In this document: one piece after another, positions 1,646 through 43,954 of the stretch
How positions within the stretch are numbered: the stretch's first letter is position 1
Layout of the letters: every line of letters starts with the position of its first letter
Assembly: GCA_028023455.1 (NCBI GenBank)
Contig: JAQFVV010000009.1
Location: forward strand, 8,494,001 to 8,558,000
Direction: 5' to 3'
Length of the DNA stretch: 64,000 nt
From: Epiperipatus broadwayi
Taxonomy: Eukaryota; Animalia; Onychophora
Notes under the pieces: generated by a model
Seen by the model: the letters and a program-made list of their open reading frames with translations, nothing else
What the model was told of the DNA's origin: nothing
Databases searched by the model: none
Made by a program: the position numbers and the translations under genes

Positions 1646-2804
1646 ATTTATTGGTTTAATATTTATATTTATAATAATCGAATTAGTTCTAAAGGAATAT
1701 AATTAAATGACTGCTATTTTGTCAAAAAAATTTTTAGTATTATATTTAACAGATAATTTTTTAAAAATAAATAAATTCAATAGTAACAGTTAAAATAAAA
1801 ATGATAGCTCAAAGTTTGAACATAAAACTAGCAAATTATCATGATTTGCACAAAAGTTAGCAAGTATTCATAACAGGTAATATCTACAAATAATTTTTCT
1901 GTCTAAATAATACATGATTTTAAAAACTTGCTTTTACTTTTAAGGAAAAATAAACTTTTATAATGAGATTGAATAATAAATATATTATAAATAGAATGTT
2001 ACATACATCAAAATACTAGTCAGTTTGGAATCTAGGATAACTTTAAAATATCTTAGTAATCAAAACATTTCATTTAGAATAATTTATTAGATAATACATA
2101 TCATGAGATTAAACATAAGTCTACTTTTTATACAATAATTACACAAGATATAAGAAATTGAGACATGTCTGAGAGGATAAGATTACTGACATAAAATTAT
2201 TTTTGAGATCATTAAGAACTACGATAACAATTTTCTCCATTTTATCTTAATCAATTATGGTATTATTATACTGCTTCTAATGTTAGTAATGTGTTTTATC
2301 ACAATCTACAAATGTTTTTGTCTTTTAAATTGAAAGTTTTCAGTGAATATAAGATGAGTTTCATTAGACAGTAATATATATGGCATGTGTCCAAGGTTAA
2401 GTTGATTGAACAATATTAACATTTATTTCACAAAGATAATGTAAACTTTTTTGTTGGAATAATTAAATTCCATAACTCAGTTTTGTAATAGCTTTATATT
2501 TTTATATAAAGTCCCTATGATATATATTTTATTTATCACATGCACATCATTATATTACTATATTTTGTATATATACATTTATACATAACAATCTATAATT
2601 TTTATTATTGGCTCCTTTTGTTTTTGTAATAAATAATCATAGCTAAAATATAAGTAATAAAAATGAGAGTAATTGTATATCAACACCTATAAAAACTGTT
2701 ATATATGAATAGGATAAAATTATATGTTCATGTATATTTATATTCATGTATTTGTATTGTTTGTTATAGTTCTGAAGATTGTTGGGGTAATCAATGGGCT
2801 GCAA

Positions 2805-5800
2805 TTATAATGAAGCGGAAAATATATTACACATATTTTTGCATCACTGTCTGGTGATTCAAAACCTTGAATCAGAGGTTTAAACCCAGCTATATATGTG
2901 TTAAATCACTAGAGAATGAAAGGACGTACCTACAAGTTTTAAAACCCTCCTTTATTTTTGTACTTTCATAAGTTAAACATTTTTATTATAAAAGAATATT
3001 TAATAAATTTAAGTCGGAAATATTTAAATTTCCATTCCCTTTAAGTAATCATGCATGTGTGTTCAAGATTTGCAAAAATACATTATTGATAAAAAAATAT
3101 TTTTCGTTATTAAATATTATGTATATTTATTGTACAGTTCGCGTATTTTATTTTATGATGCAATACCAAAGAAAGTTCTAGAGAGTAATTAAAATAACTC
3201 TGAAATGTATAAATAAAAGAATATTCTAGATTTAATTTAAAAAGGGTAATTAATAAATTAAAATCCCTTAGCAAACAGAATACTAATGAAAATTATATCT
3301 TTTAAATCTATTTCCATTCTCGAAATAGATTAAAACAATACTCTCTAGAACTTGTCGCATCATCGTTGAAAATAAACAATAGGTGCAGTCTGGCCACTTA
3401 ATGGACATCCGGGCCAAATAGAGCCGAAATTTTAGGCTGTCTCTTGGTTCGGCATCTTAAACAGTGTTGCAGAACGGACCCACATCAATTTAAATTTTGA
3501 AATATGAATCCGGAATAGAGGGTCTAAATTTGCTTCCTTTTTCTTCTCCAAAAATCGTTTCCACACTGCTATGCTAACCCACCATCTCCACTTATGGACT
3601 GCCTAATTTAAATGCTGTAATAACTATCTCAAGAAGCCAGCCATTATTTTTCAAAGCTTTGCCTTGCTTAACCGTGTTGTCCTCATTTATAATTTTACAT
3701 TTTCCAATCCGTACGTACGTCAAGACATCAGGAAACGGAAGGTAAATCCTAATCATGCCACTAATATGAACTCTTTCAAAACTTTCATTTTAAAATCTAA
3801 ATCATTTGTAATATAACTCTTTTATTTAAGCATGACATTGTAATTCTAATTGTAACCATTCTATAACGTAATGACTTTCTCTTTCTGTTATAAAAATCTA
3901 ATGCACGAATTTATAATTTTGTTTTTTTGTAATGCATTTCTTTAATTGGTTTCACAATTTCTATTTTTAATATTTTAAATGCGGTAAACTTTTATTTTTA
4001 ATATTATAAATTTCGTATGATTTAATTTAATATGCTAATAGTTTAATCGAGCGAACCAATCCTAAATTTTCTTATATTAGATATCCTAGATATTATAGGA
4101 TGTTAAATCGTAAATGTAAGCTTTCTTACCTAATTAAAAGTTCGCTCGATTGAGTAACATTTTTAAGTTATTCTATTTGCTTAGTGGCAGATTATTCGCT
4201 GCTACATTTTACTATGTCACTTTATTACCATGTTTACGCTATTGATTTTATTTTCAAATTATATTTTAAAGTAAACTTAATGACCTACCTTTGCTGTTTT
4301 TTTTATTACATGGTCAATCATTTGCCCATAACGCCATCTAGTATGCTAATTATTTATGAATTAATTACTAGTTAGCATATTAATATTTGTTTAATGAAGG
4401 GAACAATATTCCCTCTTTTATGTGTGACATCCTAACTAATATTAAAGGTCATTTGCGTACCTTTCGAGAGGGATCAAATTATTTCATATCATTATGCTAG
4501 ATTCTATTAAATTACGAGGGCCTTAATCCACATATCGGAATTATTAAGAACCCGATTTATATTTGTTATTAGCGTTGCTTGGCTTACATAATGTTATGAA
4601 ATTACCTCGCTTTGCTTTGTCAAACTAAACCCCGGAGAAACGGGATTCTTTTACTTAATGGCATAACCGTGAATGGAACTCGGAAGCACCGGCTCCAGAA
4701 TGTCAGGTTATCATTTAGGCTCTGCATGGGTTAACACTGGAAAACAGACCGTGATAATTCCTACGAGACCACCCTTTTCAAATGCTAACCTGTCACGTGT
4801 ACAGGCACATTTCATATTCTTATATTATTGATGAAGGGTTCGTCCTAAAATGAACTCGATCTATTCTAGAGTTATGATTTAATCAGCACCGCAATTCTTG
4901 TTTAATATTTTAATATTTGCCCATTTTAAATCTGTAAGACGTAATGCCATGATTTCTAAATCCAGCTCATATTTTCGTTTATATTATAAGTTAGGTAATG
5001 TCATTTTAAAGCTTACTTAAGCTAACCGCCCTCTCATTGAGACAATGCTGAATGCGCTAACAAATAATGCTAAGTAAATCTTTTCCAGTCAGAAAAGAAT
5101 AGAATAAAATACAAATAACTTTTCTATTTTAAGGTCTAATGACTATTGAAGTGAATAATGTAAATTATAAAATATTTTTGTACGTGGTTCAAATGAACCA
5201 TAATAAATTGATATAACTTATATCCTATTTATGTTTTAAGGTCACTCAATTTTAATAAAGTAATCCTAGTGACCACGTTATATAATATGGTAAAATTGGT
5301 ATCTACTATTAGCATATTAAACCGCATCTTTTGAATATCTGTATATTTTTTTGAATCATAATATCCAATCACAGATTTGCGCATTATTTAATCAGTAACT
5401 TATGTTCTATTATATAATTTTTCAATACGCAAATCAGCATTAATAACGTAAAACCCATAATTCTATTAGTGTCATATATAAATAGATTCGCAACTGTTTG
5501 TAAAGTAAATATCTGTTTATTCATTTTTTTCTAATTAATCTTAATAAATTATTAACTATATAATTATTATTTAAGTCTGCTTTGCCTCATGATTTATGCA
5601 TACACATCATTAATTAGATTGCATTATATATAGCTGATTTCCATTGACCTTAAGCCAATTTCTAGATTTATTAATGAATTTTATGAAAAGTCTAATTATA
5701 ATCTTGAGCTAGTTCATTCTGTTGGGGGGCTGGGTTTGAAGCCTGGTAGTTTATAATTCCCTGTAGATCTCGTTTCTCCGCTGTTGCTCCGGAACGGGTA

Positions 5801-5982
5801 TGAATAAAATTTCATTTGTTATCATCAGAAGTGTTGTTCGTAATGTTATAGATCTGGAAAATAGGCAAGAGGGCAGAGTTCATGATTGTTCCTGATTTAT
5901 GTATCTTGCACATGATTGGATTCGAGGTAATTTTGCCTAGATGCTAGCTCGTTAAGACGAACATACAATTCTGACCGGTACA
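2805..5982. mobile_element. Unclassified ~3.2 kb non-coding unit 1 (candidate giant solo LTR)
   Basis: Collinear similarity to 6509-9687 in many blocks. Both share the sharp end CATACAATTCTGACCGGTACA. CpG-rich relative to flanks; no long ORF. Left boundary approximate. Confidence 0.5.
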
Positions 5983-6508
5983 ATAAGAAGCATTATAAAA
6001 GTAATAAAGAATGTAAATTATATTAATATTATATGAGTAGGGTTTACTAAGCATATTAATAAAAAATAAATAAGAAAAAAAAGGTAGGTTAAAGGATTTA
6101 GCTAGTCAAATCGAAGCTGCAATGGAATATAATCAGTAATTTAAAAGAAGTAGTGGAGGACTATTCTCATAAAAATCTGCTTGTCTTCTAAATCCATACA
6201 AAGAGTGTAAATACTTTGCAATATAAGATATAGCGCGCGCGTACACATGATGGCATATAACAGGTAGCAATGAACACGTCAGAATAAAATAAGCATTAGA
6301 TACATAGCATGGCACTAAGTATATTGTATGAGCTAACTATTGCATAAGTTGGATCAGATGAAGATTCAGATCAAATATGAAGATGTTGCTATTGAAATAG
6401 CATATTAAAAGGATTGTATAAGTCCATCTCCAACACTGAAGAGAAGGTAACACATACATTGTCTGAAAATTGTATGTACACATATATATATTAAGACTGT
6501 GCAGGTAG

Positions 6509-9500
6509 TGTTCCAGCTTAGCTGCAGCTGTTAAGACATAAACCAAAGTGGAGTAGTGAAGCACTCAAATCTGTTGCACACATTTGGCTTCACTTTCTGG
6601 TGATGTTTGAGACTTGCAAATATGGGTTCAAACCCAATCATTTAATTATAAACCACTAGGGAGTGAAGGTATACCAATGCCGTGATTGTTTATGTCTCTG
6701 TAAACTTCTACTCGTCTAAAGTTAATATGCATATAAATTATATATTTCTATTACGGTAAACAATGGTGCGTATGTGTGTGTAACAGATAAAGCTTAATAA
6801 TTAAAAGCGTTATACTATGTATATTTTTATTCATATATATTCTAATAGAGAGAAAGTTCGAGAGTGTAATGCGAGTGTATTAAATAAAAGACATACCGTA
6901 TTTTAAATTCCGGAGGAATCTGTTTTCATTCTGATACAGATTTATTTAAATTTCACATTACTTAACATTTATTCCGCAGGTCTATTTTCATCCTAAAATA
7001 GATTAAGACCAACACTCTCGAACTTGATCTCGTTTGTATTTCAAAATTTTCTGTATCATTGTAACCATTAACGCATCTGGGGATTACCTAAAAGCAATAA
7101 CAAACGAGTATAAATACCACTGCATTTCCTAACTAAGGAGCTCTACATATTAATTTCTAACCCTGTTGCTGGGGGAAGTTACGTCACTCAGAACCGCAAA
7201 ATGACGAGTGAGTAGTATTTAGATTTGCTTCCCCGGTCCTTCCAAGATCCATCCAATGCCACAATACTCGTAAGCCATCGTATCCAAAATACTGCCGGAA
7301 TGAACTATATGCTACAGAAAGAACGGACTGAAATGAGAATTTCGTCAAAATACTGCTAAATTAACTAGATTTCGTCAAACATGGAACTAACACATGTGCA
7401 CACGGCTGTAAAGTCATCGGAAAGAAAGGTAATCCCCTGCCACAAAACTGAACTCTAATGCTTTCGTCCTAATAAACCTTTTAACTATAAAACGTAAATT
7501 TCAACTTTCGATAAAATTAATTCCAACCACCTAATGTATGTCTTATTAAACATTTCTAGTTTTGTACTCTTTGTAATGTAAAAATGTAATTGCTTGTTTT
7601 TCCCATCGGTAATGCTACACCGATTAAATGCTTAAATAATGACCTCCTTTTGATTTCTTATTGCTTTTATATTTAAATTGTATTTTACTCTCTAAACTTG
7701 AATACTAGGTTTTCACTCTTATTGTATTTTTATTTTAAATGCGGCAGTTTTTCGTTATTTAATATTGTACAAATCATACCAAATTTAATATGCTAATAAC
7801 TCAATCTGGCGAGTCAATCCTATTGTATTTTTGCTATTCCGCAATTAAGGAATATTTAACCGTAAACGTAAGTCTTCTTACCATGCTATAAAATTCGCCC
7901 GATTGAGAAGTACTCCTAAATTGTGTTTTATTAATTAATATTATGCCATTCGACAAAATTTAAATATATTATGTACTATTATTTCACGCTATTGATCAGT
8001 ATTATAGAAATTGAGTAATAAATAAATTTAGTTCAGAATATGTATTTCTAAATGATGATTCATTTGATAAGTAGCCCGCCATCTAACAATGATTTAAGAA
8101 ACTTATTTCTCAGGCGGATTAACATGCATTTAGCGAAGGGATTCTTAATTTTGTTTTATATATTCTATTATTAATATATCAAATAAGTTCTTTAAGTAAA
8201 TTGTATGCCCCCTTTTTGGGATTGCTTGGATATAATTATTTCATTACGCTAGGCTTGATTACCAATTAAGGCCATATAAATCAGGATTAAGACAAACCTG
8301 AAAGCCTTCGCCACGTGTCCCGATGATAACGTTCAAAAATCAAAAGTTGCTTCATCATACTCTCTCTCATTCTTGGAATCCATATAGCACAATTCTCGGC
8401 GGAGTGTGGAGGTCCCGACTCCCACAGATTGTGTTGGTTCGGTAAGCGCTGCTATGGGTTAACATTCGACAAATCGGAACCATGGTATCTTGCCAACCAC
8501 TTCGGATGCTATCCGTCACAAGTGTGGATAAGCCTATATTCTTCGTTATCAAGTTGATGAAGCTCCTCGCCCTCTCAAGCGTTATCATTCGGTCCGCACG
8601 TTATCGTTCATACTCCCCATACATATTTTAAATGTCTGTAAGCCGTAATGATGTAATTCTCCTAAGCCTTCCCAAAGTTTTCGTTATAAAATAGATTAAA
8701 TTTGCCCTTTTTATATACGTCATCGCCTATTAGCGCTATCCACCCTTCGTTAACCGCTATTAAACACGTTAATCATTGATTATTAATAAAACTATGAATG
8801 CCAAGTCATATGACCATGTTAAAATAATTATGTTTTTCCTCATTCTCTTCATAATATAATAAATGATGAATCATCTCGTAATGTCCCAAAATAACTGATT
8901 TATAGTTAATGTAACTCTTAATAAAATCCAAATGTAATCCAAGCTCGCTAGATCATTTATTGTTTAAAATGTGATGGTTAGAATAAAAGCCCACTCACAA
9001 CTATTGAATTTTGTTATATTCTATGTAATTGGAAATCATGTCATTACTCAATCTAATAGCCAGGTATGGCCATTGCAATCCATTATAGTTTTCATGATTG
9101 AAGAATGTCATAGCGTGAATAATAGAAACCCGTTAAATTATATTAGCATATTAAGCCGCATCGTTCATATAATAAATTTATTACCATGTATGTTTAGTAA
9201 TGCATATCCATCAAACCTTGTTATGCCATTAAGGTTAGTATGGAATGCATAGGTGACCATAAGTGAAACCTAGATCAGGTATTCTTTGTATAATCAAGGT
9301 TCTAAGTCATTGTAAATCTCTATATCTAGCTGTTCACATATAAATCGATTTCTAATATTAATTTCATGTTAAATAAATTTACATTTAATAATCTATCTTT
9401 TGGAGATTTTATTGGATCATGCGTACACATCTCTTATTACTTTGCGTTATCATTTAGTTAAGCTTAAATCTCTTGTGTCTCTGCTGAACCCTCTGGGCCG

Positions 9501-9687
9501 GAGATAATTGGAAAGTAGGTTGCTATCGTCAGAAATGTTGTTTGTAATGTGATAGATTTGGGAGGTGGGCAATAGGGCGGAGTTCATGAGTATCCCTGAC
9601 CTGTGTATCTCGTATATGATTGAACTCTAGGTACTTTTGCTTAGATCCTAATTCTTGTTAGATGAACATACAATTCTGACCGGTACA
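6509..9687. mobile_element. Unclassified ~3.2 kb non-coding unit 2 (candidate giant solo LTR; TGT..ACA, 4-bp GTAG flanks)
   Basis: gtag|TGTTCCAG at 6505-6516 and CCGGTACA|gtag at 9680-9691. Homologous to unit 1 at an offset of ~3.7 kb. Confidence 0.5.
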
Positions 9688-12487
9688 GTAGGGGTGGACA
9701 ACAGTCAAATATAGAAGAATATTGGTCTTCGAGTCAATACCATATATAGCAGTAAACATACCATCACAAAGAAATCAAGGTCACCATGGTGAAATGACCC
9801 AAGATAAAAAGCACCAGACCACAGTAATCTAAGCTGGATAAACAACAACTCTGCAATCATCTGTTATTTGAGCAAAATCTGAGGAGTGATAACAGAACCA
9901 CAAACTGCACATTCTTGCAATAATCTTTATGTTTATATGAATAATAAATATGTTAAATTATAATTGGAGTTTGTATTATAGAGATTAAGTTGCAGAACAC
10001 AACAGATACAATCTATCTTTTAGTTCTATGGTAATATAAGCTATTTTAAACTAAAGGGCAAATTTTGTCTATTATTTTATGTTCAGATTAAATAATCTGA
10101 AATCATAGTTATTTCAATTACTTATATTTGTTTTTATAAATTCAACAAATTTTCTCTTGAATTTGAAAAGCAACTTATTTAAAATATCTCTGCTGTTAAT
10201 TTGGGTATTGATTTTGTGTTAAATGCAGAAAATTCATGCAATACCTTGAAACTAAAGAGTAAAATTGTACAAATTCTGATAAATCCAAGTTGTTAAATGA
10301 ATGGATAATGAATTATAATCAAGTACAATTAAGTTTTGCTGATGCTGATTTAGACTAACTATTAATGAAAGCTAGATAAATAATTACTCTGAATAAATAA
10401 AAAAAATTGCACTTTTCTCCATAAGTAAGGAGATAATATGACATAAAAATAATATCTTGGATATTTTTTTTGCTTTAATCAATAATCTATCTAGAATGTG
10501 ATTTTTATTAATAATTTATCTGTTTATTAATATTAACCAAAACAAAATTTTAAAAATATATGTGATTTTATCTTATTTGATCAATTAGAATTTTTATGTT
10601 CATATTATGAAATAGCTAAAGTAAATATACTAGAATATTAAATAAAAGTTACAGTATCATGAAATTTAATGAGTGATTATTTTGCGGAGTGATCTTATTT
10701 CAAATATAATATAGTTGTGGAATATATGGATGTCATTTTGCATTTGAGATAGTTGTATCTTCTGAATTAAAGATGTTAAAAGGTTTAAAATAGAAGGCAA
10801 CTTGTGTATATATGTAAATGAAACTATTTGCATTAAAAAATGTATAACAAATAATGTCCATAACCAGGGCCAAGGAAGGCAGTAAGCAAAGCATAAGGGT
10901 GCTGAAACGAAGGGTGCAAAAATGGTGTAGAATTAAGAATACATTTTTATTGTTACGAATATTAGTAATTTACAATTATTAATTAATGTGGCTTGATTCA
11001 TTATTTCTACAAAAGAAGGCAATATAAACATATTAAAATAAATAATAACTTCTTGAAAAATGATTTGCCAGTTGTCTTCTTATGCTGGATTTACACAATT
11101 CATATTTCACATCAACTTGCTGTGATGTGAAAATAGAAGCCCATTTTACTATTACTATCCATGCCTTTACATATATATTTTATAGTTATTTGCTATCTCT
11201 AAAATAAAAATAATAAACATAACATCAAAATTTTTATTAGTTTATTATAAAAATATCTTAAATTTCTGTGTCAAGCAAAATTTTAAAAAAAAAAATCCAA
11301 AACGTCTCTGTATTTTTTATAGCAATTGATATTCTTGTAATAATTTTGGAAAAATCACGGTTTTCTATTTAGTTTTAAAAACAACACAAATATAACTTTA
11401 AAGAGAAATAAAAAGGGGCAATTGGACTAATAAAATACATAATACTGTATACATGTGAATAAATTAGTTAAAATAAGATTAGTAAAGCAATATTTATATT
11501 AATGTACACACAATGATAAAACTATTTATAGTAGTGACATAAATTTTTAATGCAATAATTAAATATGAATGTGCATATATATTTAAATATAAAGCAGTAC
11601 TATTTAAAAATATTTAGGTAAAGTTATTTGAAATAAAATCTCAATTATTGTGAGAATGGTAAATAAAATAATCATTTATTTTAATACCTGTAATATAAAT
11701 ATTTATTGTAATTTTGTGATTTGTATATTTAATTTTATTAAAGTATAATATTTATTTAAATGTTTTAAAATTTTATGTGCATACCTCTCAATTGTTCTAA
11801 TAAATAAACAAAGCAACAGAAAAATATTTATCAGGTAAAATGCGTTCAAAAAAAAAGGAAATTTAAAGATGTTTTTGAAATGTAAAATTATAAGCTATTT
11901 TGTCAATTGCTATAGTTTAAAGCAAAAATTTAAAAAAAATGGTACACACCTGCATTTTAAAAATTAATAGAATTACTTTTTGTAAACAATTTTCTCAAAA
12001 ATGCTAGAAAATTTCACCTCTAAGGAGATTACTAATTATCTACTTTACAACTATACAAATGAAGAAAAACAACTTATTGTAATTTTCTTAAGGATTATCT
12101 CATAAACGGACTGATTCAAAAGATAAAATTTCATCAACATTTATTGTTCTATCAGACTTAATTCTTCTCAGTTCTCTGTGATTTTATAATTAACGCCTCA
12201 AAGATTTTCAATCATTTTTATTTAAAAAAAACATTCTAAAAGATTTCATCAAATAAAAATTATTCAAACTCTTAAAAGACTTTAAGTGAAATTTAGGTTA
12301 TAAAGGATATTTGTTATTAATTATTATTATTATTATATATAGTTGCTCAAGTAAAAAAAAAAAAAGATTCTGTAGATAATATAATTTAAATTATATGGTA
12401 TTATAATTTCAATATCATGACTTGTTATGAGTGTAATATGTTTTGATGAGATTGTTAATATTAATTATTTATTCATAATTTAAATAT

Positions 12488-12779
12488 ATCACATGATCAC
12501 TATCTTATACTAGCATATAATTGTTTATAAACAAAGCAAAACTCTCCATACAGTATTGCCATCCTGTGCCATCCAGAGTAATCAATGAATGCCAGAAAGC
12601 TTGTGCATAAAATCCCTATCTAATGCCTACTCATCCAATATCCCCAGACTAGTTTCTGGCTTGTGGCCTTCTGGCATTTCATTGATTACTCTGGATGGCA
12701 TAGGGTGGCAATACTGTAAAGAGAGTTTTGCTTTGTTTATAAACAATTATGTGCTAGTATAAGATAGTGATCATGTGAT
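12488..12779. mobile_element. Hammerhead-family repeat, copy 2: ~290-bp palindrome including the tail on both arms
   Basis: ATCACATGATCACTATCTTATACTAGCATATAATTGTTTATAAACAAAGCAAAACTCTC.. is mirrored by ..GAGAGTTTTGCTTTGTTTATAAACAATTATGTGCTAGTATAAGATAGTGATCATGTGAT with a few substitutions. The ribozyme is truncated at the fold-back junction (12666-12670). Confidence 0.8.
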
Positions 12780-12974
12780 GCTTAATGGGTTAACACCAAT
12801 CCTGCCTAATAGGATAGTGGTGGCTATGGTTGTTAAAGAGCCAAAGACACCAAAATGTATGGGCACTGAACTGAGTTCAGACCCATATGACTATATAAGC
12901 TATTGAGCTTAGATTGAAAATATTTTTGTGTTTTCAATTTCATTCTCATAGTTTTGTAGTTAAGTAGAGATAAA

Positions 12975-13196
12975 AGGTGGGTGCTGGAGGGTTGCATTAG
13001 ATCCTAAGATCTAGGTGCAGTGCTCTCAGATCCAAAGCTCCTCACTGACGATGGTCACAAACCAGAAACTAGTCTGGGGATATTGGATGAGTAGGCATTA
13101 GATAAGGATTTTATGCACAAGCCTTCTGGCATTCATTGATTACTCTGGTTGGCACAGGGTGGCAATACTGTATAGAGAGTTTTGCTTTGTTTATAA
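12975..13196 (+). mobile_element. Hammerhead-family repeat, copy 3 (unrearranged, contains the intact ribozyme motif)
   Basis: Reverse complement of the bodies of copies 1 and 2. Ends GAGAGTTTTGCTTTGTTTATAA without the longer tail. Confidence 0.8.
13030..13088 (+). ncRNA. Minimal type I hammerhead ribozyme
   Basis: Stem I TCCTCA (13039-44)/TGGGGA (13075-80); core CTGACGA (13045-51); stem II TGGT-cacaa-ACCA; GAAA (13065-68); palindromic ACTAGT stem III; GTC cleavage triplet ending 13074; outer helix ATCCAA/TTGGAT. Confidence 0.8.
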
Positions 13197-14974: not shown

Positions 14975-17900
14975 CTATTAATTGAAAGAACACTCTTTGA
15001 TTCCTCTTGGATGCCTTAAAGGAACCTAGCAGGGCAAATTCATAATGTCCATTCCATTGGTTCTTGTTATTGCAGCTGTGATTACTATGTGATTACTCAT
15101 ATAGTATACGAACATTGATGGGCTGCTCACCAACACACATTAGCCAGCGTAGTGAGTTTATTGGCTTTTTACCTCTGAGTTTACAATCAAAAAACACTAT
15201 GGTCTTTCTTCTCAGTTGCCTGATAAGGCAGAATAAATGTTTGTGTAAATGATAAATATTTTTCTAATATATATAATTATGACAGACAAAAATAAATCAT
15301 GGCCCTTATTCCCAGAAGGCTGTAAAGTCACCAACCAAGGCAGCGGTTGGTGGCTGAAGGCAGAGTGCTAAAAATCCCCTGATTGTGGACCCAGGCTGCC
15401 ATTTGATGACGACTTTTTATTTAGGTACTTACAATTGCAGATTGCAAGAATTAGAAAAAGAACAGTCTTATATTATATAAGACATTATTGGACTTTGTGA
15501 AGTTAAAAGAAAAGGTGAAGAGACAATTTATTTAAAGAGTGGACACATGCTCTATTATAAAGGTACAAATGTTGGAAATACAAGTGGAGTAGGATTTATT
15601 ACAAATAAAAAGTGAAAGAACAACATTGTGGAAATTGATGGTGTATCAGACAGAGTGGCAAGATTAGTTATACAACTTAATAGCAGATACCAAATGCAGA
15701 TAATTCAGATTTATGCCCCAACAAGTTCTCATAGTGATGAAGTAGTAGAAGATTTTTATATGGATGTACAAAAGGCTTTTGATCAGAGTAAACAACCTTT
15801 TAAAATTGTTATGGGAGACTTTAATGCTAGAATTGGTAAACAAATGAAAGATGAAAGTGCTATAGGTAATTATGGTTATGGTAATAGAAATGAGAGAGGA
15901 CATAGACTTGTGGAGTTTGCAGAAAAAGAAAAACTTTATATTATGAATTCTTTTTTTGAAATGTTAAAAGGAAATGTACATGGAAGCATCCAAATGAAGG
16001 TGCAGCAGAATTGGATTATACTTTAACTAACAGAAAATAAATATTTCAAGATTATAATGTTCTTAATAAATTTAACATGGGAAGTGATTATTGATTAGTA
16101 AGATGTAAGATACATGTTAATGCAAAACTAGAGACAAAAATTATTGAAAAAAACAACAATATTTACAGTTCATATTCCTAATCTTCAGAAACATTCTAAT
16201 GAATCGGTTTCAAGTATTAGTAGATTTTGAACATGATACAGATTTGAATGAAATTAATATGAAAATAACTGATACATTTTTAAAAACTGCAACAAACATA
16301 GGTGGTAGAAAAAAGCAGTAATTGACCAATAAAATTTCTACTGAGACTAGAGAATTTATGAAGAAAAGAAGGACTATAAAGATATACAAAAATGATGCAT
16401 TAAAAAGGATTGAATATCTCAAATTTTGTAAAATGGTGCGGAAAAGAGTTGAATATGATATAAGAAAGTATAACTGTGAACTAGCAAGGAAAGCAGTAGA
16501 AGAGAATAAAAGTTTCAAGAGTATAAAACAATATTTTGGTATTGGTAGGAAATTTATATCTGCAATAAGAAAAAAAGATGGAATTATACTAAAAAGAGAG
16601 ATGACATCATGAAATGGGTAAAACACTTTTATCAAGAATTATATAGTAATAAAGAAGAAGTACCTCCTATATCTATTACATCTTCCGAATTGCCCAGAAT
16701 TTTAAATGAAGAAGTGAGACATGCAATTAAATGTATGAAGAAAGGAAAGGCTTCAGGTAATGATGGAATTATAATTGATGTATTAAAAAAAAGCCAGAGA
16801 AGAATTAGAAAAAATATTAGCAAAGTTATATACGGAAATATCTAAATGACAAAGATGTACTAGATATTTGGAAGAATGCAGTATTAATATTAATATTTTA
16901 AAAAGGTGATAAAGAAGATATTAGAAATTACAGACCTATTAGCCTTTTATCAGTTTTATACAAAATTTTTACCAAGATAATTACAACTCGTCTACAGAGA
17001 ACATTGGATTTTCACCAACCAAGAGAACAAGCTGGATTTAAAAATAGTTTTACTACAGTAGATCATATCCAGGTATTGAGAGAAGTTATAGAAAGGACAA
17101 ATGAATATGAGTTGCCATTATGCTTTGGATTTGTAGATTATGAAAAGGCATTTGATTCCATAAACATTTCTTCAGTGATTAAAGCATTGAATCATCAAAG
17201 TATAGATCCAGGATATTGTCATATTTTAAAGAATATTTATAAAAATGCAACAGCAACAAACATAATGATATTAGGAAAGTTAACATTGAGATGGGTGTAA
17301 GACAGGGTGACTCCATATCTCCAAAACTTTTTACAGCAATGCTGCAAGAAGTATTTTATGGATTAAAATGGGAAGCTAAAGGAGTGAAAGTAAATGGAGA
17401 TTATTTAAGTCATTTAGATTTTGCAGATGATGTAGTTGTTTTTGCAAATAATACTTTAGAGCTGCAGGAAATGTTGCAGGAGTTATAAGATGAAAGTAGG
17501 AAAGTAGGACTAGAGATAAATGTTAAAAAGACTAAAATAAGGTTTAATGGATTTTCTCAAAATATGAAAATAAAGATTGATTATGATGAGTTAGAAGAAG
17601 TTAACAATTAAAACATGTTGGTCAGATTATTAATACAGATGGAAACATAATGGATGAAATTAATCATAGAATTAAACTTGTTTGGAGTGCTTTTGGTAAA
17701 AATAACTTGATACTAAAAGGAAATATGCCTATGTGTTCGAAAAGGAAGGTTTTTAATAAATGTGTTTTACCTGTTCTTATTTATGGATCTGAGACTTGGA
17801 CACTTAATAGAAGAGCAATACAGAGACTTCAGACCACTCATAGAAGTATAAAAACATGCATATTGGGAGTAACAAGAAGAGATCGAAAAAGCAATATATG

Positions 17901-18187
17901 GGTAAGAGAACAATCAGGGGTTACTGACCTCATTGAAAAAATTAAAAGACTGGAGTTGGGCTGGACATATTGCTAGAAGAGATGATAATAGATGGACAAT
18001 TGAAATCTTAAACTGGATTCCAAGAGATTGTAAAAGACCTAGAAAGAGATCACATGTGAGATGGATGTATGAAATAAGAAAGTGTGCAGGGTAATGTGGA
18101 GAAGAGAAGCTAAAGATCGGAGATGGATTGAACTTGGAGAGACCTTCATCCTACAGTGGAATGATAATGGTTGATGATGTGATGATG
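14975..18187 (+). mobile_element. Full-length but inactivated RTE-clade LINE (APE endonuclease + RT)
   Basis: Fragmented ORFs with QIYAPTS, VMGDFNARIG, REQAGF, GFVDYEKAFDS, GVRQGDSISPKLF, HLDFADD, VLPVLIYGSETW; TGA-rich tail at 18162-18187; many stops and frameshifts. Confidence 0.92.
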
Positions 18188-18189
18188 AA

Positions 18190-18720
18190 TTATAGGTTGA
18201 GAGATGTATATAAAACTATATGTGAAATTTGTAAAATGATTTACTTTGGTCATACAGGCAAACAATTAGAGGTAAGAGTCAAAGAACATAATAATGCAAT
18301 TAATAGAAGAGATGATAAATCTGCATTATACACTCATTACTTGAAATATGGGTATAGAATAGATGCTACAAAATGTATTAAATGTTTAAAAAAATCCAAA
18401 AAAAGACAAATATATGAAACATACTATATTAAAAATAATTTAAGTAATTGTATATTTATTTACAAGACTTTATAAATTTGGTTAATAATTGGTTAATTAA
18501 AAATGAATGGAAAATTATATAAATTGACATATATATAATTGTAAAAAGTACATGTAATTTATTTTATTTATTGTATTGTTATGATATATTCAATTATTTT
18601 GTAATATGCAGATTTTGATTTATTTATTTTTAATGATTTATATTATTTTTTTGTTTTAATTTCATTATTGAACACTAGATGGTTTTATATCTGAAATAGT
18701 TCATTAACGTAATAGATTAT
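18190..18720 (+). mobile_element. 3' end of a Penelope-like element: GIY-YIG endonuclease fragment and AT-rich 3' region
   Basis: YKTICEICKMIYFGHTGKQLEVRVKEHNNAI..SALYTH..RQIYETYYI matches the PLE GIY-YIG pattern. A decayed hammerhead-like string lies at 18674-18702. Confidence 0.75.
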
Positions 18721-21699: not shown

Positions 21700-22263
21700 A
21701 AGATGAGTTTTGCAATGACTATATAAATTAATTCATGAATCACAATTGAACATATTGATCTTTTAAACTGTTTGTTGACATTTTCTAAGACTGGTTTTTA
21801 ATTTCTTCAGTAGCAAACATTTATTTTTTGAAAGATTTCAATGCCTTGCCTAATAATTCTATCCAAAGACATATTCTTTTTACTGTTTCTTTGAAACTTT
21901 TTATAATAAATAGAATATGACTCTTCTCATGAAATTAATAGCACTGTGTACATTTAATTTAGTTGAGGTAGAAATATTAATATCATTAAATATCCTATTT
22001 TTAAAATTGTTAAATGCAGGAGCATAATATTAGAATCTATACTGCACTATCTATCTAAGTCTGTATCTAAAAGGCTATGGTATATTTAAATTGATTTTCA
22101 TTCACATGCTGATAACAATTCAAAAAAAAAAAAAAAGCTAAAGATATTTTTTTCCATCACTGACAGATAAAGCACCTGATTTATTGAAAATTAATTACTA
22201 CACCAAAATGCTTATATGTTTCAAATATTAAAAATATTAATTGCAAGAACATCATAATTATTA
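21700..22263 (+). pseudogene. Upstream part of a decayed hAT transposase split by the foldback unit (tentative)
   Basis: LKGYG at ~22067-22081 resembles hAT GQGYDG. Its distance to RHDAI (32341), after removing 22272-32244, is ~290 nt, as expected for hAT. Weak on its own; start approximate. Confidence 0.3.
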
Positions 22264-22276
22264 GAATTTTGAGTAC

Positions 22277-24013
22277 TCTAACCCGACCTGCTATGTGGCT
22301 GCTAGAGGCGCTGTTTCTGTGTTAGCACACAGAACATACAGGGTAGGTGCCTCAAAAGCAGATGACGCATTTTCCTGCTGCTAGGTGGCGCTGTTCACCA
22401 TGTGTACGCACAGGAACCTTCCACAAGCTAGCTGGCGCTGATTGCCATAAACACATCTAGCTTAGGTGTCATCTGCTATCAGAAACTACCAAGATTCTAG
22501 CCCACTACGTGGCGCTGTTTCTCCATGTTACACACAGTAAAAACAGCAACCTCTAAATGCCTCCTTGCTAGCGTTTATGAACATAGTACTTAAAGCATTC
22601 AGGGCCTATAAGGTACAGGGGTGAATAATTTATAAGTCATAACTATTTAAATATAGGGTCAAACGTAATAGTTTTACATTCTATTTCACCATTTCATGAA
22701 TCAATGTATTTTTAAATTATGACTTTGTAAAAAGCGATCTGTTTTTTTTAATTATTTACTCTAAAAGTGTTTTTTTTTAAAAAATAAATAAAACAAAAGG
22801 TAATTTTTATGACAATCTAAAAATCGGTCTGTTTTTTTTTTTTTTTTTTAAAAAAAGCTAATTCCTACGGCAGTATTTCTTTCAAAACTGTATTATTTTA
22901 AAAGATTATTGTTTGTAAAACTTTTTTTTTTACACTTTCAATTAATATTTTCAATAAATTTTAAAATAATACAAATTATATTTCGGTTTATAGATTACTA
23001 TTTCGAAAAATAAAGTGTTATTTGCGTGCTGGGTATACCGCGTGCTTGTTACTCGCAAGCAATATTTCGAAGATCTGTTTATCAAAACTTCCTTTCACAA
23101 TAATATTCAAGGCATAAATATTAATTGAAATTGTATTTAAAATTTTAGAATCATTTTAATAACTAAAAATGTCATATACTCACAACGAAATTTCAAAATA
23201 ATAAGTACCGTATGAGAAAGGTAAGATATTATACAGAGGCAGAAAAAAAAAAAAGATTTAGAGCAAAATATATATACATTTAATATCTTTATTGATGGTT
23301 GGAATTTAAAAAGTTTCTTTCAAAACTGATGCTCTTGTTAGGCTTGTATACTGTTAAAATTAAAACTATTAGTCCTCATAAATAATTTGGAAGACATTGC
23401 CTGTAAAAATTGGATGATCATTGAAAATTATATATGATCTTAATAGCCTAAAATTCAGAAGCCTGATAGTACTGTCTTTGCCAATGCACTGTTTCTTTCT
23501 TTCATTATTGATACATAAGTAGGAACAGGTAACCACATTTATTAAAAATCTTCCTTTACAGACACATAGGTATATTTCCTTTTAGTAGCAAGTTATTTCT
23601 ACCAAAAGCACTCCAACCAAGTTTAATTCTATGATTAATTTCATTCATTATGTTTCCATCTGTATTAATAATCTGACCAAGGTGTTTGTAAGTGTTAACT
23701 TCTTCTAACTCATCATAATCAATCTTTATTTTCATATTTTGAACAAATCCATTAAACATTACTTTAGTCTTTTTAACATTTATCTTTAGTCCTACTTTCA
23801 TCTGATAACTCCTGCAACATTTCCTGCAGCTCTGAAGCATAAGTTGTAAAAATAACTACATCATCTGCAAAATCTAAATGACTTAAATAATCTCCATTTA
23901 CTTTCACTCCTTTAGCTTCCCATTTTAATCCACAAAATATTTCTTGCAGCACTGCTGTAAAAACTTTTGGAGATATGGAATCACCCTGTCTTACACTCTT
24001 CTCAATGTTGACT
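22277..24013 (-). repeat. Left inverted arm (GC-rich terminal module + unique AT-rich DNA + RTE RT fragment)
   Basis: Reverse complement of 30454-32231 along its length, roughly 90-95% identical by eye. ORF 23556..23840 is the RTE fragment. Confidence 0.92.
22297..22517 (+). promoter_or_regulatory. Cluster of CTCF-like motifs in the left terminal module
   Basis: GCTAGAGGCGCTG (22301), GCTAGGTGGCGCTG (22380), GCTAGCTGGCGCTG (22427), CCACTACGTGGCGCTG (22502), compared with the CTCF core CYAGRKGGCGC. Confidence 0.45.
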
Positions 24014-28122: not shown

Positions 28123-30958
28123 CTATTAATTGAAAAGAAACCCTTTGATTCCTCTTGGAGGCCGCCTTAAAGAAACTGAGCAAGGCAAATTCTTAATGTC
28201 CACTCCATACGTTCTTGTCATTGCAGCTGTTATTACTATGTGATTATTCATATACTATATAAACATGGATGGGCTGCTCACCAACACGCATTAGCCAGCG
28301 CGACGAGGTTATTGGATTTTTACCTCTGAGTTTAAGATCAAAAAACACCATGGACTTTCTTCTCAGTTGCCTGATAAGGCACAATGAATGCTTGTGTAAA
28401 TGATATTTTTCCAATATATATACAATTATGACAGACAAAAATAAATCATGGCCCTTATTCCCAGGAGACTGTAAAGTCACCAACCAAGGCAGGAGTTGGT
28501 GGCCGAATGCAGAGGCTGCTCAGAATCCCCTGATTGTGGATACAGGCTGCCATTTGATGATGCCTTTTTTTATTTAGGTACTTACAACACCAGATCACTT
28601 TCAAGTGAAGGAAGCTTGCAAGAGTTAGAAGAAAAACTGTCTTATATTAAATGGGATATTATTGGACGTTGTGAAGTTAGAAGAAAAGGTGAAGAGACAA
28701 TTGTTTTAAAAAGTGAACATGTACTCTATTATAAAGGCACAAATATTAGAAATACAAGTGGAGTAGTATTCATTATAAATAAAAAGTGGAAGAACAACAT
28801 TGTGGAGATTGATGGTGTATCGGACAGAGTGGCAAGATTAGTTATACAACTTAATAGCAGATACCAAATGCAGATAATTCAGGTTTATGCCCCAACAAGT
28901 TCTCAAAGTGATGAAGTAGTAGAAGATTTTTATGTGGATGCACAAAAGGCTTTTGATCAGAGTTAACAACATTTTAAAATTGTTATAGGAGACTTTAATA
29001 TTAGAATTGGTAAACAAATGAAAGACAAAAGTGCTGGTGGTAATTTTGGTTATGGTAATAGAAATGAGAGAGGACAGAGACTTGTGGAGTTTGCAGGAAA
29101 AGGAAAACTTTATATTATGAATTATTTTGAGAAAAATGTTAAAAGGAAATGGACATGGAAGCATCCAAATGAAAGTACAGCAGAATTGGATTATATTTTG
29201 ACTAACAGAAAATACATATTTCAAGATTGTAATATTCTTAATAAATTTAACAGAGGAAGTGATCATCGGTTAGTAAGATGTGAAATACATGTTAATGCAA
29301 AACTAGAGAGACAAAAATTATTAAGAAAAACAATATTTACAGTTGATATTCATAATTTTCAGAAATATTCTAATGAATTTAAAATAGAACTTACAAATAG
29401 GTTTCAAGTATTAGTAGATTTTGAACATGATTCACATTTGAATGAAATTAATAAGAAAACAACTGATTCACTTTTAAAAACTGCAACAGCACTTGATCAA
29501 TAAAATTTCTACTGAGACTAGAGAATTTGTGAAGAAAAGAAGGAATATGAAGATATACAAAAATGATGCATTAAAAAGAATTGAATATCTCAAATTTTGT
29601 AAAATGATGCAGAAAAGATTTGAAAATGATATAAGAAAGTATAACTGTGAAATAGCAAGGAAAGCAGCAGAAGGGAATGAAAGTCTCAAAAGTGTAAAAC
29701 AACATTTTGGTATTGGTAGGAAATTCATATCTGCAATAAAAAAAAAAGCTGGAATTATTACTAAAAAGAGAGATGACATCATGAAATGGATAGATGACTT
29801 TTATAAAGAATTATATAGTAATAAAGAACAAATACCTCCTATATCTATGACATCTTTTGAATTACCCAGAATTTTAAATGAAGAAGTGAGACATGCAATT
29901 AAATATATGAAGAAAGAAAAGACTCCAGGTAATAGTAGAATTATAATTGATATATTAAAAGAAGCAGGAGAAAAAATATAATTTTTTTTAGCAATGTTAT
30001 ATACCAAATGTCTAAATGATAAAGATTACCAGATGATTGGAAGTATGCAGTATTAATATTATTATTTAAAAAAGATGATAAAGAGGATATTAGAAATTAC
30101 AGACCTGTCAGTCTTTTATAAGTTAAATACAAAATTTTTACCAAGATAGTTAGAACTCGTCTACAGAGAACATTGGATTTCCCTCAACCAAGAGAACAAG
30201 CTGGATTTAAAAGTGGTTTTAGTACAGGAGATCATATCCAGGTCTTTAGAAAAGTTATAGAAAGGATAAATGAATATGAGTTGCCATTATGCTTTGGATT
30301 TGTAGATTATGAAAAGGCATTTGAATCTATAAACTTTTCTTCAGCGATTAAAACATTGGATCATCAAGGTATAGACCCAAGATATAGTCAAATTTTAAAG
30401 AATATTTATAAAAATGCAACAGCAACAATTAGATTAGATAATGATACTGGGAAAGTCAACATTGAGAAGAGTGTAAGACAGGGTGACTCCATATCTCCAA
30501 AAGTTTTTATAGCAGTGCTGCAAGAAATATTTTGTGGATTAAAATGGGAAGCTAAAGGAGTGAATGTAAATGGAGATTATTTAAGTCATTTAGATTTTGC
30601 AGATGATGTAGTTGTTTTTGCAACTTATGCTTCAGAGCTGCAGGAAATGTTGCAGGAGTTATCAGATGAAAGTAGGACTAAAGATAAATGTTAAAAAGAC
30701 TAAAGTAATGTTTAATGGATTTGCTCAAAATATGAAAATAAAGATTGGTTATGATGAGTTAGAAGAAGTTAACAGTTAAAAACACCTTGGTCAGATTATT
30801 AATACAGATGGAAACATAATGGATGAAATTAATCATAGAATTAAACTTGGTTGGAGTGCTTTTGGTAGAAATAACTTGATACTAAAAGGAAATATACCTA
30901 TGTGTCTGTAAAGGAAGATTTTTAATAAATGTGTTTTACCTGTTCTTACTTATGTATC
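28123..30958 (+). mobile_element. RTE-clade LINE, same family as 14975-18187; intact 5' end, 3'-truncated
   Basis: Shares the 5' start CTATTAATTGAAA. Motifs LGTYNTRSL, QVYAPTS, GSDHRLV, FVDYEKAFES, RQGDSISPK, DFADD. Homology stops after CTTACTTATGTATC; multiple stops. Confidence 0.92.
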
Positions 30959-32231
30959 AATAATGAAAGAAAGAAACAGTGCACTGGCAAAGACAGTACT
31001 ATCAGGCTTCTGAATTTTAGGTTATTAAGATCATATATAATTTTCAATGATCATCCAATTTTGACAGGCAATGTCTTCCAAATTATTTATGAGGACTAAT
31101 AGTTTTAATTTTAACAGTATACAAACCTAACATGAGCATCAGTTTTGAAAGAAACTTTTTAAATTCCAACCATCAATAAAGATATTAAATGTATATATAT
31201 TTTGCTCTAAATCTTTTTTTTTTTTTCTGACTCTGTATAATATCTTACATTTTTCATATGGTATTTATTAAACCTATTATTTTGAAATTTCCTTGAGTAT
31301 ATGACATTTTTAGTTATTAAAATGATTCTAAAATTTTAAATACAATTTCAATTAATATTTATGCCTTGAATATTATTGTGAAAGGAAGCTTTGATAAACA
31401 GATCTTCGAATTATTGCTTGTGAGTAACAAGCACGCGGTATACCCAGCACACAAATAACACTTTATTTTTCGAAATAGTAATCTATAAACCGAAATATAA
31501 TTTGTATTATTTTAAGATTTATTGAAAATATTAATTGAAAGTGTAAAAAAAAAAGTTTTACAAACAATAATCTTTTAAAATAATACAGTTTTGAAAGAAA
31601 TACTGCCGTAGAAATTAGCTTTTTTTTAAAAAAACAAAAAACAAAACACAGACCGATTTTTAGATTGTTGTAAAAATTACCTTTTGTTTTATTTCCAAAA
31701 AAAAAACACTTTTAGAGTAAATAATTAAAAAAACAGATCGCTTTTTACAAAGTCATAATTTAAAAATACATCGATTCATGAAATGGTGAAATAGAATGTA
31801 AAACTATTACGTTTGACCGTATATTTAAATAGTTATGACTTATAAATTATTCACCCCTGTACATTATAGGCCCTGAATGTTTTAAGTACTATGTTCGTAA
31901 ACGCTAGCAAGGAGGCATTTAGGGGTTGCTGTTTTTACTGTGTGTAACGTGGAGAAACAGTGCCGCGTAGAGGGCTAAAATCTTGGTAGTTTCTGATAGC
32001 AGACAACACATAAGCTGGATGTGTTTACGGCAATCAGTGCCACCTAGGTTCTTGGTAGCAGACGATGTAAGCTGCCAGTTAGCTTGTGGAAGGTTTGTGT
32101 GTATGCATGGTGAACAGCCCCACCTAGTGGCAGGAAAAAGCGTCGTCTGCTTTCGAGGCCCCTACCCTGTAGGTTCTGTGTGCTAACGCAGAAACAGCAT
32201 CTCTAGCGGCCACATAGCAGGTCGGGTTAGA
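30454..32231 (+). repeat. Right inverted arm
   Basis: Begins inside the RTE at AGTCAACATTGAG and ends GGTCGGGTTAGA. Carries an extra ~35-40 bp subunit near 32042-32080. Confidence 0.92.
31955..32212 (-). promoter_or_regulatory. Cluster of CTCF-like motifs in the right terminal module (opposite orientation)
   Basis: Minus strand shows CCACTAGGTGGGGCTG, CCTAGGTGGCACTG, CTACGCGGCACTG and GCCGCTAGAGATGCTG. Confidence 0.45.
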
Positions 32232-37433: not shown

Positions 37434-38084
37434 AAAAGATAATTTAATAATCAATACAGAGACATATTAAAATATTTACAGATTCTGTTTAGTATGCGTT
37501 TTCTCTGCCAAACAATATAGACTAGCAATATGCTACATGAAAGCCATCTTAATTTATTTGCAGGGTTCTATGCAAAAGAAATGCAAGGCCTTTTATTTAA
37601 AATCAAGAGTGTGACTAAATATAATTGCAATAATAAAATAGATTAAAAAAATAATGCATTTTTAAAACGCAAGATTAAATTATATATTATATTATGCACA
37701 TGTAGAGGCATAGATTGTTTTACGTGCATAAATATATACAGTAGCAGACATAGTACAAAAGATAATTTAATAATCAATACAGAGACATATTAAAATATTT
37801 ACAGATTCTGTTTAGTATGTGTGTTCTCTGCCAAACAATATAGACTAGCAATATGCTACATGAAAGCCATCTTAATTTATTTGCAGGGTTCTATGCAAAA
37901 GAAATGCATGGCCTTTTATTTAAAATCAAGAGTGTGACTAAATATAATTGCAATAATAAAATAGATTAAAAAAATAATGCATTTTTAAAACGTAAGATTA
38001 AATTATATATTATATTATGCATATGTAGAGGCATAGATTGTTTTACATGCATATATATATATACACAGTAGCAGACATAGTACA
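37434..38084. repeat. ~323-bp tandem duplication
   Basis: AAAAGATAATTTAATAATCAATACAG..CAGACATAGTACA starts at 37434 and 37757; a few substitutions and a longer TA run in copy 2. Confidence 0.95.
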
Positions 38085-43914: not shown

Positions 43915-43954
43915 CACAATAGTAACTTTCCCCATACAATATTATCACTTCGCA

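Follow-up and report, generated by a model that had tools for sequence, protein, structure and literature searches.

The two large non-coding units in the window, a stretch of 64,000 nucleotides from the onychophoran Epiperipatus broadwayi, are solo LTRs from two related LTR-retrotransposon families, here termed F1 (unit 1) and F2 (unit 2). The explanation as a whole, to which we assign a probability of about 0.7, is that these solo LTRs carry base-paired features inherited from lineages that were once active. The copies in the window are decaying fossils, and are not expected to function.

Identity and boundaries of the units

The units and the short duplications around them are located as follows.

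2807..2810, no strand: ATAA target-site duplication 5' of unit 1 (identical 4 bases at 5983-5986)
2811..5982, + strand: unit 1, solo LTR of family F1, 3172 nt, TGAAGC...CCGGTACA
5983..5986, no strand: ATAA target-site duplication 3' of unit 1
6553..6556, no strand: GTAG target-site duplication 5' of unit 2 (repeated at 9688-9691)
6557..9687, + strand: unit 2, solo LTR of family F2, 3131 nt
9688..9691, no strand: GTAG target-site duplication 3' of unit 2

The units have identical orientation and are separated by 566 bp. TG...CA termini (TGAAGC...CCGGTACA) are shared by both units and by nearly all of the 23 copies for which both ends were readable, the exception being one that begins GGAAGC. 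Other copies are also surrounded by 4-bp target duplications (GGTT, GTAG, ATAC and ATAT). Since each unit has its own target duplication and TG...CA ends, and belongs to a dispersed family, the units are solo LTRs and not a single locus that has been duplicated. An F1 and an F2 copy would thus have inserted independently at this distance from each other, and recombination between LTRs would have deleted the body of each retrotransposon, leaving a single end-repeat per site.

Neither unit contains a long ORF. A search of the window with Rfam covariance models at gathering thresholds gave no match (rRNA, ribozymes, hammerhead retrozyme, introns), and in the region 2700-9800 there was a single snoRNA match with an E-value of 0.67, which is chance level.

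The earlier note on this DNA had judged the units to be two-thirds to three-quarters identical. The measured identity is lower: columns aligned by MAFFT are about 61% identical, and BLAST alignments between the units are limited to three blocks. The conserved blocks at the two ends of the LTR are:

2825..2923, + strand: conserved 5' block (matches 6572-6671)
5765..5982, + strand: conserved 3' block (matches 9466-9687, about 80% identical)

The 5' block forms a similar branched hairpin in both units, but with z-scores of only -1.9 and -1.7. The 3' block, which appears to hold R/U5 and the integrase end, folds no better than shuffled sequence.

Genomic copies and a complete element

F1 and F2 are dispersed through the 5.6-Gb genome, with about 1,000 or more copies each. 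There are at least 2841 candidate matches to the 3' block of unit 1 and at least 984 F2 candidates, and the exact 3'-terminal 18-mers occur 1211 times genome-wide, compared to 0 in the control. Ten of the 12 F1 copies fetched align essentially full length, with 87-94% identity and sharp ends; one of the other two is interrupted by an insertion near its 5' end, and the last is without the first ~290 nt. All 12 F2 copies fetched align end to end, at 96-98%. Many same-strand LTR pairs lie 4.9-9.9 kb apart, and those spaced 9.6-9.9 kb suggest elements of autonomous size.

One complete F2 element (C6833) consists of two F2 copies separated by an internal region of 3217 nt, with the duplication ATAC at either outer end, and the same internal sequence also adjoins other F2 copies. 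The internal region starts GTGACATTTTTTTTCTCCGGGTTGGACGCCCAAC.., with TGG-starting candidates for the primer-binding site 22 and 37 nt in, for which no tRNA was matched. At its other end ...GGGGGAATA immediately precedes the 3' LTR, the polypurine-tract junction being ...CTGGGGGAATA followed by TGAAGC. Within it is a gag-like ORF with a weak match to Retrotrans_gag (E 0.0019, below Pfam's cut-off). This region, the single one examined, is non-autonomous with a gag remnant, and no RT or integrase is linked to the LTRs. For F1, the role of LTR is indicated by homology with F2 together with six polypurine-tract junctions, at which a PPT-like GGGGAATA stands directly before an F1-type 5' end (TGAAG[C/T]GG; 6 genomic sites, 0 in the control). 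The occurrence of these sequences as direct repeats, enclosing an internal region with gag and a terminal polypurine tract, marks the units as solo LTRs.

These results bear directly on the reading given in the earlier note, in which the units are diverged copies of a gene for a large, structured non-coding RNA or single-stranded DNA, of a class that could not be named. The lack of a long ORF and of an Rfam match, and the presence of conserved stems, would agree with such a gene. Against it, both units are insertions of mobile elements, each with a target duplication of its own and with dispersed copies that number hundreds to thousands, and retrotransposons carry this sequence as their direct terminal repeats. 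The target duplications, the dispersed copies and the direct LTR pairs around an internal region led us to reject this class, which we regard as scarcely credible. The element can be named as a solo LTR, from its TG...CA ends, 4-bp duplications, copy number of around 1,000 or more, and occurrence as direct repeats around a gag-bearing, PPT-ended internal region. The candidate "undescribed system" is therefore removed, and is replaced by ordinary repeat DNA in an intron-like, repeat-rich stretch.

Local folded domains

The proposal that these non-coding units contain several stems selected for pairing is borne out by compensatory changes, folding z-scores and conservation in many families. Structural selection in both units holds for the elements a, e and b; of the other stems included in the same claim, c is wrong and d is weak. 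Two of these elements are local domains.

3168..3358, + strand: domain a, unit 1 (15-18-bp closing stem around three hairpins)
6849..7030, + strand: domain a, unit 2 (fold and alignment covariation)
4042..4154, + strand: domain e, unit 1 (14-15-bp stem closing two small hairpins; z -5.4)
7800..7907, + strand: domain e, unit 2 (z -4.7)

Domain a, of about 190 nt, has an MFE of -41.4 kcal/mol in unit 1 (z -5.9 vs shuffles) and -47.8 kcal/mol in unit 2 (z -5.8). Its stem is perfect in both, as had been described, with a 15-nt inverted repeat at 3173-3187/3339-3353 and a 14-nt one at 6854-6867/7012-7025, the latter extending to 20 nt at 90%. The compensatory indel noted previously is instead two compensatory substitutions, T-A to G-C and A-T to T-A. 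In this domain 15% of paired columns differ between families, compared to 47% of unpaired ones. Domain e (about 110 nt), which was overlooked in the earlier note, starts directly after the left arm of b, and its closing stem has three compensatory changes.

Taking domains a and e together at the level of family majorities, both families keep 48 of the 49 pairs. Two-sided compensatory changes are seen at 7 of the 49 pairs and one-sided wobbles at 3, where slid controls give 0-2. Base-pairing in domains a and e was clearly under selection. The comparison is of two families and their sub-families, and the independent compensatory events are for this reason few (about 7-8).

A long-range helix

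Stem b is of a different kind, in that its two arms are far apart. All four arms pair in the MFE folds.

3979..4042, + strand: stem b left arm, unit 1 (ATGCGGT, 40-nt spacer, TTTAATATGCTAATAGT)
5305..5327, + strand: stem b right arm, unit 1 (contiguous complement)
7739..7798, + strand: stem b left arm, unit 2
9141..9161, + strand: stem b right arm, unit 2

The pairing originally described is confirmed in both units: in unit 1 there are 17 perfect nt at 4026-4042/5305-5321 plus ATGCGGT/ACCGCAT, and in unit 2 there are 14 at 7785-7798/9141-9154 plus ATGCGGC/GCCGCAT. The helix is 21-23 bp and spans 1.3-1.4 kb. No other inverted repeat of k>=10 is conserved in sequence between the units (control mean 0.09). 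The domains that it closes, of 1.36 kb and 1.43 kb, have z-scores of -6.0 and -4.9 respectively.

The sequence of helix b is unchanged in at least 10 LTR families. The unit-2 left-arm pattern has 546 exact genomic matches and the unit-2 right arm 641, with 0 for each in the control, and both arms are exact in spacer types A, A2, B, C, D, D', E, F, G and I, where they are 1.21-1.53 kb apart. Both arms being invariant, helix b has no family-level covariation. The T-A to C-G difference that had been read as compensatory is private to the F1 copy in the window, other F1 copies having C-G like F2; genome-wide, the left T occurs in 16 copies and the right A in 29, and both occur together only in the copy in the window.

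This invariance raises the question of whether the conserved inverted repeats, and chiefly the arms of b, are bound as double-stranded DNA by a sequence-specific protein rather than forming helices. Candidates would be an enhancer or transcription factor acting in U3, and the core ATGCTAAT resembles an octamer-type motif. The constancy of the arms over at least 10 families that are otherwise ~60% identical would suit a protein site, as would the missing covariation and the occurrence of the 8-mer core at additional positions in F1 copies. However, the right arm is a contiguous 21-nt complement of two left-arm pieces with a variable spacer of 28-46 nt, and a contiguous right arm facing a split left arm suits a bulged pairing better than a fixed protein site. 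In addition, most F1 copies and the G-type copies retain b pairing through sense-strand U.G wobbles, and a protein site cannot account for the compensatory changes in a and e. We consider this explanation unlikely, and favour helices inherited by the solo LTRs.

It is also conceivable that the stems have no function of their own, being relic terminal inverted repeats (TIRs) left by old DNA transposons or MITEs inside an ancestral LTR. In outline, domain a (about 180 bp, inverted ends of 15 bp) and the 1.3-kb segment between the arms of b do resemble TIR elements. Neither arm pair is flanked by a target duplication, however, and the interiors have diverged like the rest of the LTR while the arms are still paired, with compensatory changes, where unselected relics would be expected to decay. 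This makes a relic origin very improbable.

The remaining two stems were proposed to be nested within b. Stem c does not hold, since its left arm has a local partner: GATTGAG pairs with CTCAATC ~100 nt upstream, with covariation, and in unit 1 this arm falls inside domain e. The right arm of c is not conserved within F1. Stem d is weak. A 7-bp A/T-rich core is common to both units (4318-4324/5190-5196 in unit 1), but the 11-bp helix is present in the unit-2 fold only.

8054..8064, + strand: stem d left arm, unit 2 (pairs with 8865-8875, 11 bp; weak)

Strand and possible role of the folds

At the family level G.U pairs are present on the + strand and there are no A.C pairs, and the + strand folds better than the - strand in all four comparisons. 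The folds are most likely cis-acting structures of the sense retrotransposon RNA. The same helices could also form in plus-sense DNA, which tolerates G.T wobbles and is indistinguishable from RNA of the same sense by the present data, and they might therefore act in single-stranded DNA during reverse transcription. Folding in the minus sense is disfavoured. Plus-strand U3 DNA is copied from a minus-strand template, and should not stay free for long. A role in DNA is therefore improbable, and we return to the sense RNA.

R-U5 is probably the conserved last ~200 nt, and the folds would therefore sit in U3. The U3/R/U5 borders are guessed from conservation, and which arms share one RNA is therefore likewise a guess. 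On this basis we hypothesise that U3, as the long 3' untranslated part of the retrotransposon RNA, would carry the folds as post-transcriptional elements that act in cis on the export, stability or packaging of the unspliced RNA, and that helix b would hold the 1.3-kb domain shut. Alternatively, if transcription starts between the b arms, the 3' U3 would pair with the 5' R/U5, and the RNA would be cyclised for strand transfer.

A bolder proposal is that the 1.3-1.4 kb closed by b is a large structured RNA module with a job as yet undescribed for LTR retrotransposons, such as a scaffold of RNA in place of a protein function, or an unusually long device for 5'-3' cyclisation. It is prompted by the invariance of b in at least 10 giant-LTR families and by the flanking covarying domains a and e. 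We give it only a small chance; if true, it might partly account for the great length of these LTRs.

Whichever role applies, this is an animal LTR-retrotransposon super-family whose 3-kb LTRs contain discrete covarying RNA-type domains and a strictly conserved helix of 1.3-kb range. The domains and helix b are testable candidates for cis-acting elements in long LTRs (export, stability, packaging, strand transfer), and the b arms and termini can be used as markers for annotating these families in this genome.

Comparison with known systems

The units resemble Ty3/gypsy-type solo LTRs in their TG...CA ends, their 4-bp target duplication with a preference for TA-rich sites, their many solo copies, and the direct pairs that enclose an internal region with gag and a polypurine tract at its end. 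The superfamily is defined by the pol order PR-RT-RH-IN together with a gypsy-type RT, whereas the likeness here is in the LTRs and one non-autonomous internal region. At 3.1-3.2 kb, the units are at the upper end of LTR lengths in animals. The arms also recall MITE-like nested inverted repeats, in being short, perfect and bounding a discrete segment, but differ from these in being without a target duplication and in being maintained by compensatory changes.

Conserved RNA structure in the LTRs and 3' regions of retroelements is already known (PMC4588558, PMC3681743). Structured post-transcriptional elements include the HTLV-1 RxRE in the 3' LTR, the musD MTE beside the 3' LTR, and the PTE of MLV/XMRV, which is ~1400 nt (PMC4588558). 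Like the folds of F1 and F2, these are non-coding multi-stem-loop domains in or beside a 3' LTR; long-range contacts matter in them, and one example is ~1.4 kb. The F1 and F2 folds have no sequence or Rfam relation to them, and their position within the transcript is inferred. In the CYC5-CYC3 cyclisation of Ty1, the RNA has one motif of ~7 nt in its 5' region and the other close to its 3' end (PMC3681743). These too are short, strictly conserved complements placed far apart, a model that would fit b if transcription starts between its arms, although helix b is 21-23 bp and has both arms inside the LTR. These solo LTRs with their conserved folds thus illustrate well a kind of element that is already known, rather than a new system.

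Two solo LTRs

Judged from their sequences, units 1 and 2 are solo LTRs that inserted independently 566 bp apart and belong to two related families of LTR retrotransposons (families 1 and 2). Reading of the junctions places them as follows, the plus strand being the sense strand of the element, with TG...CA reading into the internal region:

2811-5982, plus strand: unit 1, solo LTR of family 1, termini TGAAGC...CCGGTACA, ATAA flanking both sides
6557-9687, plus strand: unit 2, solo LTR of family 2, same termini, GTAG flanking both sides

The assignment follows from observations made across the genome (a 5.6-Gb assembly of 18,588 contigs). Contig C6833 carries two copies of the unit 2 type in direct orientation, 96.5-98% identical to each other, with 3217 nt between them and a common outer duplication, ATAC. 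The intervening sequence includes the remains of a gag-like ORF (Retrotrans_gag, E 0.0019, below Pfam's cut-off) and ends in ...CTGGGGGAATA, a polypurine tract lying immediately 5' of the downstream TGAAGC; no primer-binding site or pol gene was recognised in it. The same internal sequence also adjoins four further copies of the unit 2 type. Many same-strand pairs 4.9-9.9 kb apart were present in the genome pattern listings. Exact genome matches to the 18-nt 3' terminus number 1211 (reversed control 0), and GGGGAATA is found immediately 5' of unit-1-type 5' ends at six sites (control 0).

Several other readings were considered and rejected. Tandem duplication of one locus is ruled out, since the units differ in family and are each flanked by a separate target duplication. 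A reading of the ends as SINE or LINE tails, or as the ends of Helitron or TIR transposons, is ruled out because the copies end in TG...CA, have 4-bp duplications, lack terminal inverted repeats and include LTR pairs. Neither unit contains direct repeats of the kind that a whole TRIM- or LARD-like element would have. An rRNA, tRNA or known RNA gene is ruled out likewise, as the window has no tRNA (ARAGORN) or Rfam match at gathering level.

Copies and relatedness

Between the two units BLAST aligns three blocks only, namely the last ~170 nt (80% identity), a central ~200 nt (71%) and 25 nt (92%). In a MAFFT alignment of 24 sequences ~61% of aligned columns are identical between the units, and there are conserved islands in the first ~100 nt, around 3309-3349, 4014-4174 and 4922-4962, and over the last ~220 nt.

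Both families are abundant. The 3' block of unit 1, used as a genome probe, gives at least 2841 candidates, the best 40 of which are 94-97% identical and have a common end base; a probe specific to unit 2 gives at least 984. Twelve copies of each family were fetched. All 12 of family 2 match the entire unit 2 at 96-98%. Ten of the 12 of family 1, fetched with long flanks, are near full-length relative to unit 1 at 87-94%, with sharp boundaries; of the other two, one is missing its initial ~290 nt and one is interrupted by an insertion near the 5' end. Duplications of 4 bp at other copies include GGTT, GTAG, ATAC and ATAT, and (TA)n targets are favoured. A metagenome scan for relatives in other species returned 14 hits, all of them due to chance and none similar to the LTRs.

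Some individual copies may be noted. Unit 1 lacks, at 3415, ~45 nt that are present in other family-1 copies. A segment of ~110 nt in unit 2 (8984-9093) is missing from two of the 12 family-2 copies (L056 and L059) and from several genomic copies; it lies between stem d and the right arm of stem b (both described below) and marks an insertion/deletion sub-line. Family-1 copies L002, L006 and L010 (contigs C8247, C7914 and C14063) share a 600-nt 3' flank at 98-99% and an identical internal deletion, and are probably a single locus in triplicate, through segmental duplication or uncollapsed haplotigs. On contig C4 (4313300-4325500), three same-strand LTR copies spaced by ~4.76 kb look, from coordinates only, like a tandem LTR-internal-LTR array. 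Contig C775 (L067 and L069) has three family-2 copies within 15 kb, in mixed orientation and with pieces of internal region in between.

Setting in the window

The window is repeat-rich eukaryotic DNA of animal type, with a G+C content of ~26-30% and almost no long ORFs. Other repeats within it are:

15013-18475, 22261-24013, 28164-31082 and 60404-60826: decayed LINE copies, with endonuclease (below Pfam's cut-off) and reverse transcriptase domains
22425-24013 and 30454-32050: inverted LINE partners, arms 94-98% complementary
39935-43957, minus strand: higher G+C (38-40%), with an RVT_1 reverse-transcriptase ORF at 40414-40851; a separate retroelement with no relation to the two LTRs
1357-1628, 12488-13196 and 43929-44079: short palindromic repeat family (fold of 1401-1600, z -5.6); no hammerhead match in Rfam at gathering level
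35573-35764: tandem duplication, 96 nt x2, 100%
37434-38056: tandem duplication, ~323 nt x2, 98%

Two of the LINE copies are direct repeats, ~90% identical and 13.17 kb apart.

Local domains a and e

The earlier note had proposed that both units preserve a set of inverted-repeat stems (a to d), as an undescribed folded RNA or single-stranded DNA. The units are an ordinary class of element, solo LTRs, and their secondary structure is real and selected.

Stem a is the second-longest perfect inverted repeat of unit 1, and its unit 2 counterpart is among the best there. In each unit it closes a domain of ~190 nt (domain a) round three hairpins, with z-scores of -5.9 and -5.8. The pairing is thus upheld, and what had been described as a compensatory indel proves to be two compensatory substitutions. 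In an alignment of 20 copies, one pair of the 14-bp closing stem is G-C versus U-A; a second is A-U in family 1, U.U in one sub-line of family 2 and U-A in the other, a series that looks like a two-step compensation. An inner 10-bp hairpin has U-A versus C-G between the families, and two G.U pairs in family 2. Differing columns in domain a make up 15% of paired positions versus 47% of unpaired ones.

Stem c does not survive, since its right arm is unconserved within family 1 and its left arm pairs locally. About 100 nt upstream of this arm (GATTGAG, or GATTGAA in most family-1 copies) lies its partner, CTCAATC (TTCAATC). Together they form a hairpin domain, here called e, which is not in the earlier note and is located directly 3' of the left arm of b. 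Its 14-bp closing stem, with a single constant mismatch, encloses two small hairpins; the z-scores of the domain are -5.4 and -4.7. Compensatory changes number three in that stem, with more in the part it encloses. Stem d is weak, with a 7-bp A/T-rich core common to both units and an 11-bp helix in the unit 2 fold only.

Domains a and e have 49 helical pairs. With each family represented by its most frequent state, 48 of them pair in both families and one is broken; seven have changed on both sides yet still pair, and three have changed on one side to a wobble. When partners are slid by 1-3 columns as a control, only 0-2 double changes are seen and pairs are mostly broken. The independent events are few, coming from two families and a handful of sub-lines, yet the pattern on the aligned copies is unlike unselected divergence. 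Wobbles at family level are G.U on the plus strand, with no A.C, and the z-score is better on the plus than on the minus strand in all four comparisons.

A sliding 200-nt z-score scan gave only scattered signals in arbitrary frames, and the structure is therefore limited to discrete domains, not spread along the LTR. The conserved 5' and 3' blocks give similar folds in the two units, with no significant advantage over shuffles. Genomic copies decay freely, for example by CpG changes in the stem arms, so that selection acted on the replicating lineages and not on these fossils.

The long-range stem b

Stem b (3979-4042 with 5305-5327 in unit 1; 7739-7798 with 9141-9161 in unit 2) is well founded. 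It is the sole inverted repeat of k at least 10 that is conserved in sequence between the units (control mean 0.09), and the minimum-energy folds of the 1.36-kb and 1.43-kb segments both contain it (segment z -6.0 and -4.9). Exact genome matches number 546 for the left-arm pattern and 641 for the right arm, with none for controls. The right arm lies 1.21-1.53 kb downstream of the left in at least 10 spacer types (A, A2, B, C, D, D', E, F, G and I, LTR families told apart by the spacer between the two pieces of the left arm), as paired from listed coordinates, families beyond 1 and 2 being represented by 80-nt stretches of sequence and coordinates.

The change from T-A to C-G in this stem had been taken as a compensatory difference between the units, and this part does not hold. 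Family-1 copies other than unit 1 have C-G at that pair. Genome-wide, the left T occurs in 16 copies and the right A in 29, and both together (C-to-T at 3985, G-to-A at 5321) only in the window copy, where the double change may be due to chance or to an unsampled sub-line. Copies of type G with the left T retain the right G, giving a wobble, and TGTTAG in the right arm of most family-1 copies gives a U.G wobble on the sense strand. Genome-wide pattern counts show no association at this Y/R pair. Because the T-A state is private to the window copy and the left T of type G keeps its right G, stem b is conserved, not covarying.

The arms are as strictly invariant as the termini, which fits a helix whose sides cannot easily co-change. 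The same invariance leaves room for the arms as a protein-binding site, as does the presence of the core 8-mer at additional family-1 sites.

Possible function and comparison with known elements

Conservation in the LTR is highest over the final ~200 nt, which, going by conservation only, probably contain R-U5 and the integrase end. On this basis the arms of b and the two local domains would all lie in U3, which in the genomic RNA is confined to the 3' untranslated part. There the folds could serve as a cis-acting element governing export of unspliced retroelement RNA, which we consider their most likely role. Poly(A)-tailed retrocopies ending just past the right arm of b, which would mark the poly(A) site, were sought and none found, an uninformative result. 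The significance is modest, and lies chiefly in the study of cis-acting RNA elements in retrotransposons.

Control of the export of unspliced retroelement RNA by structured multi-stem elements in or beside the 3' LTR is well documented, as for the RxRE that HTLV-1 has in its 3' LTR, the musD MTE and the bipartite ~1400-nt element of MLV (PMC4588558). Alternatively, if transcription starts between the arms of b, each end of the RNA would carry one arm, and their pairing would cyclise it. The arms would then resemble the CYC5-CYC3 pair of Ty1, which aids reverse transcription (PMC3681743), although the Ty1 pair is much shorter.
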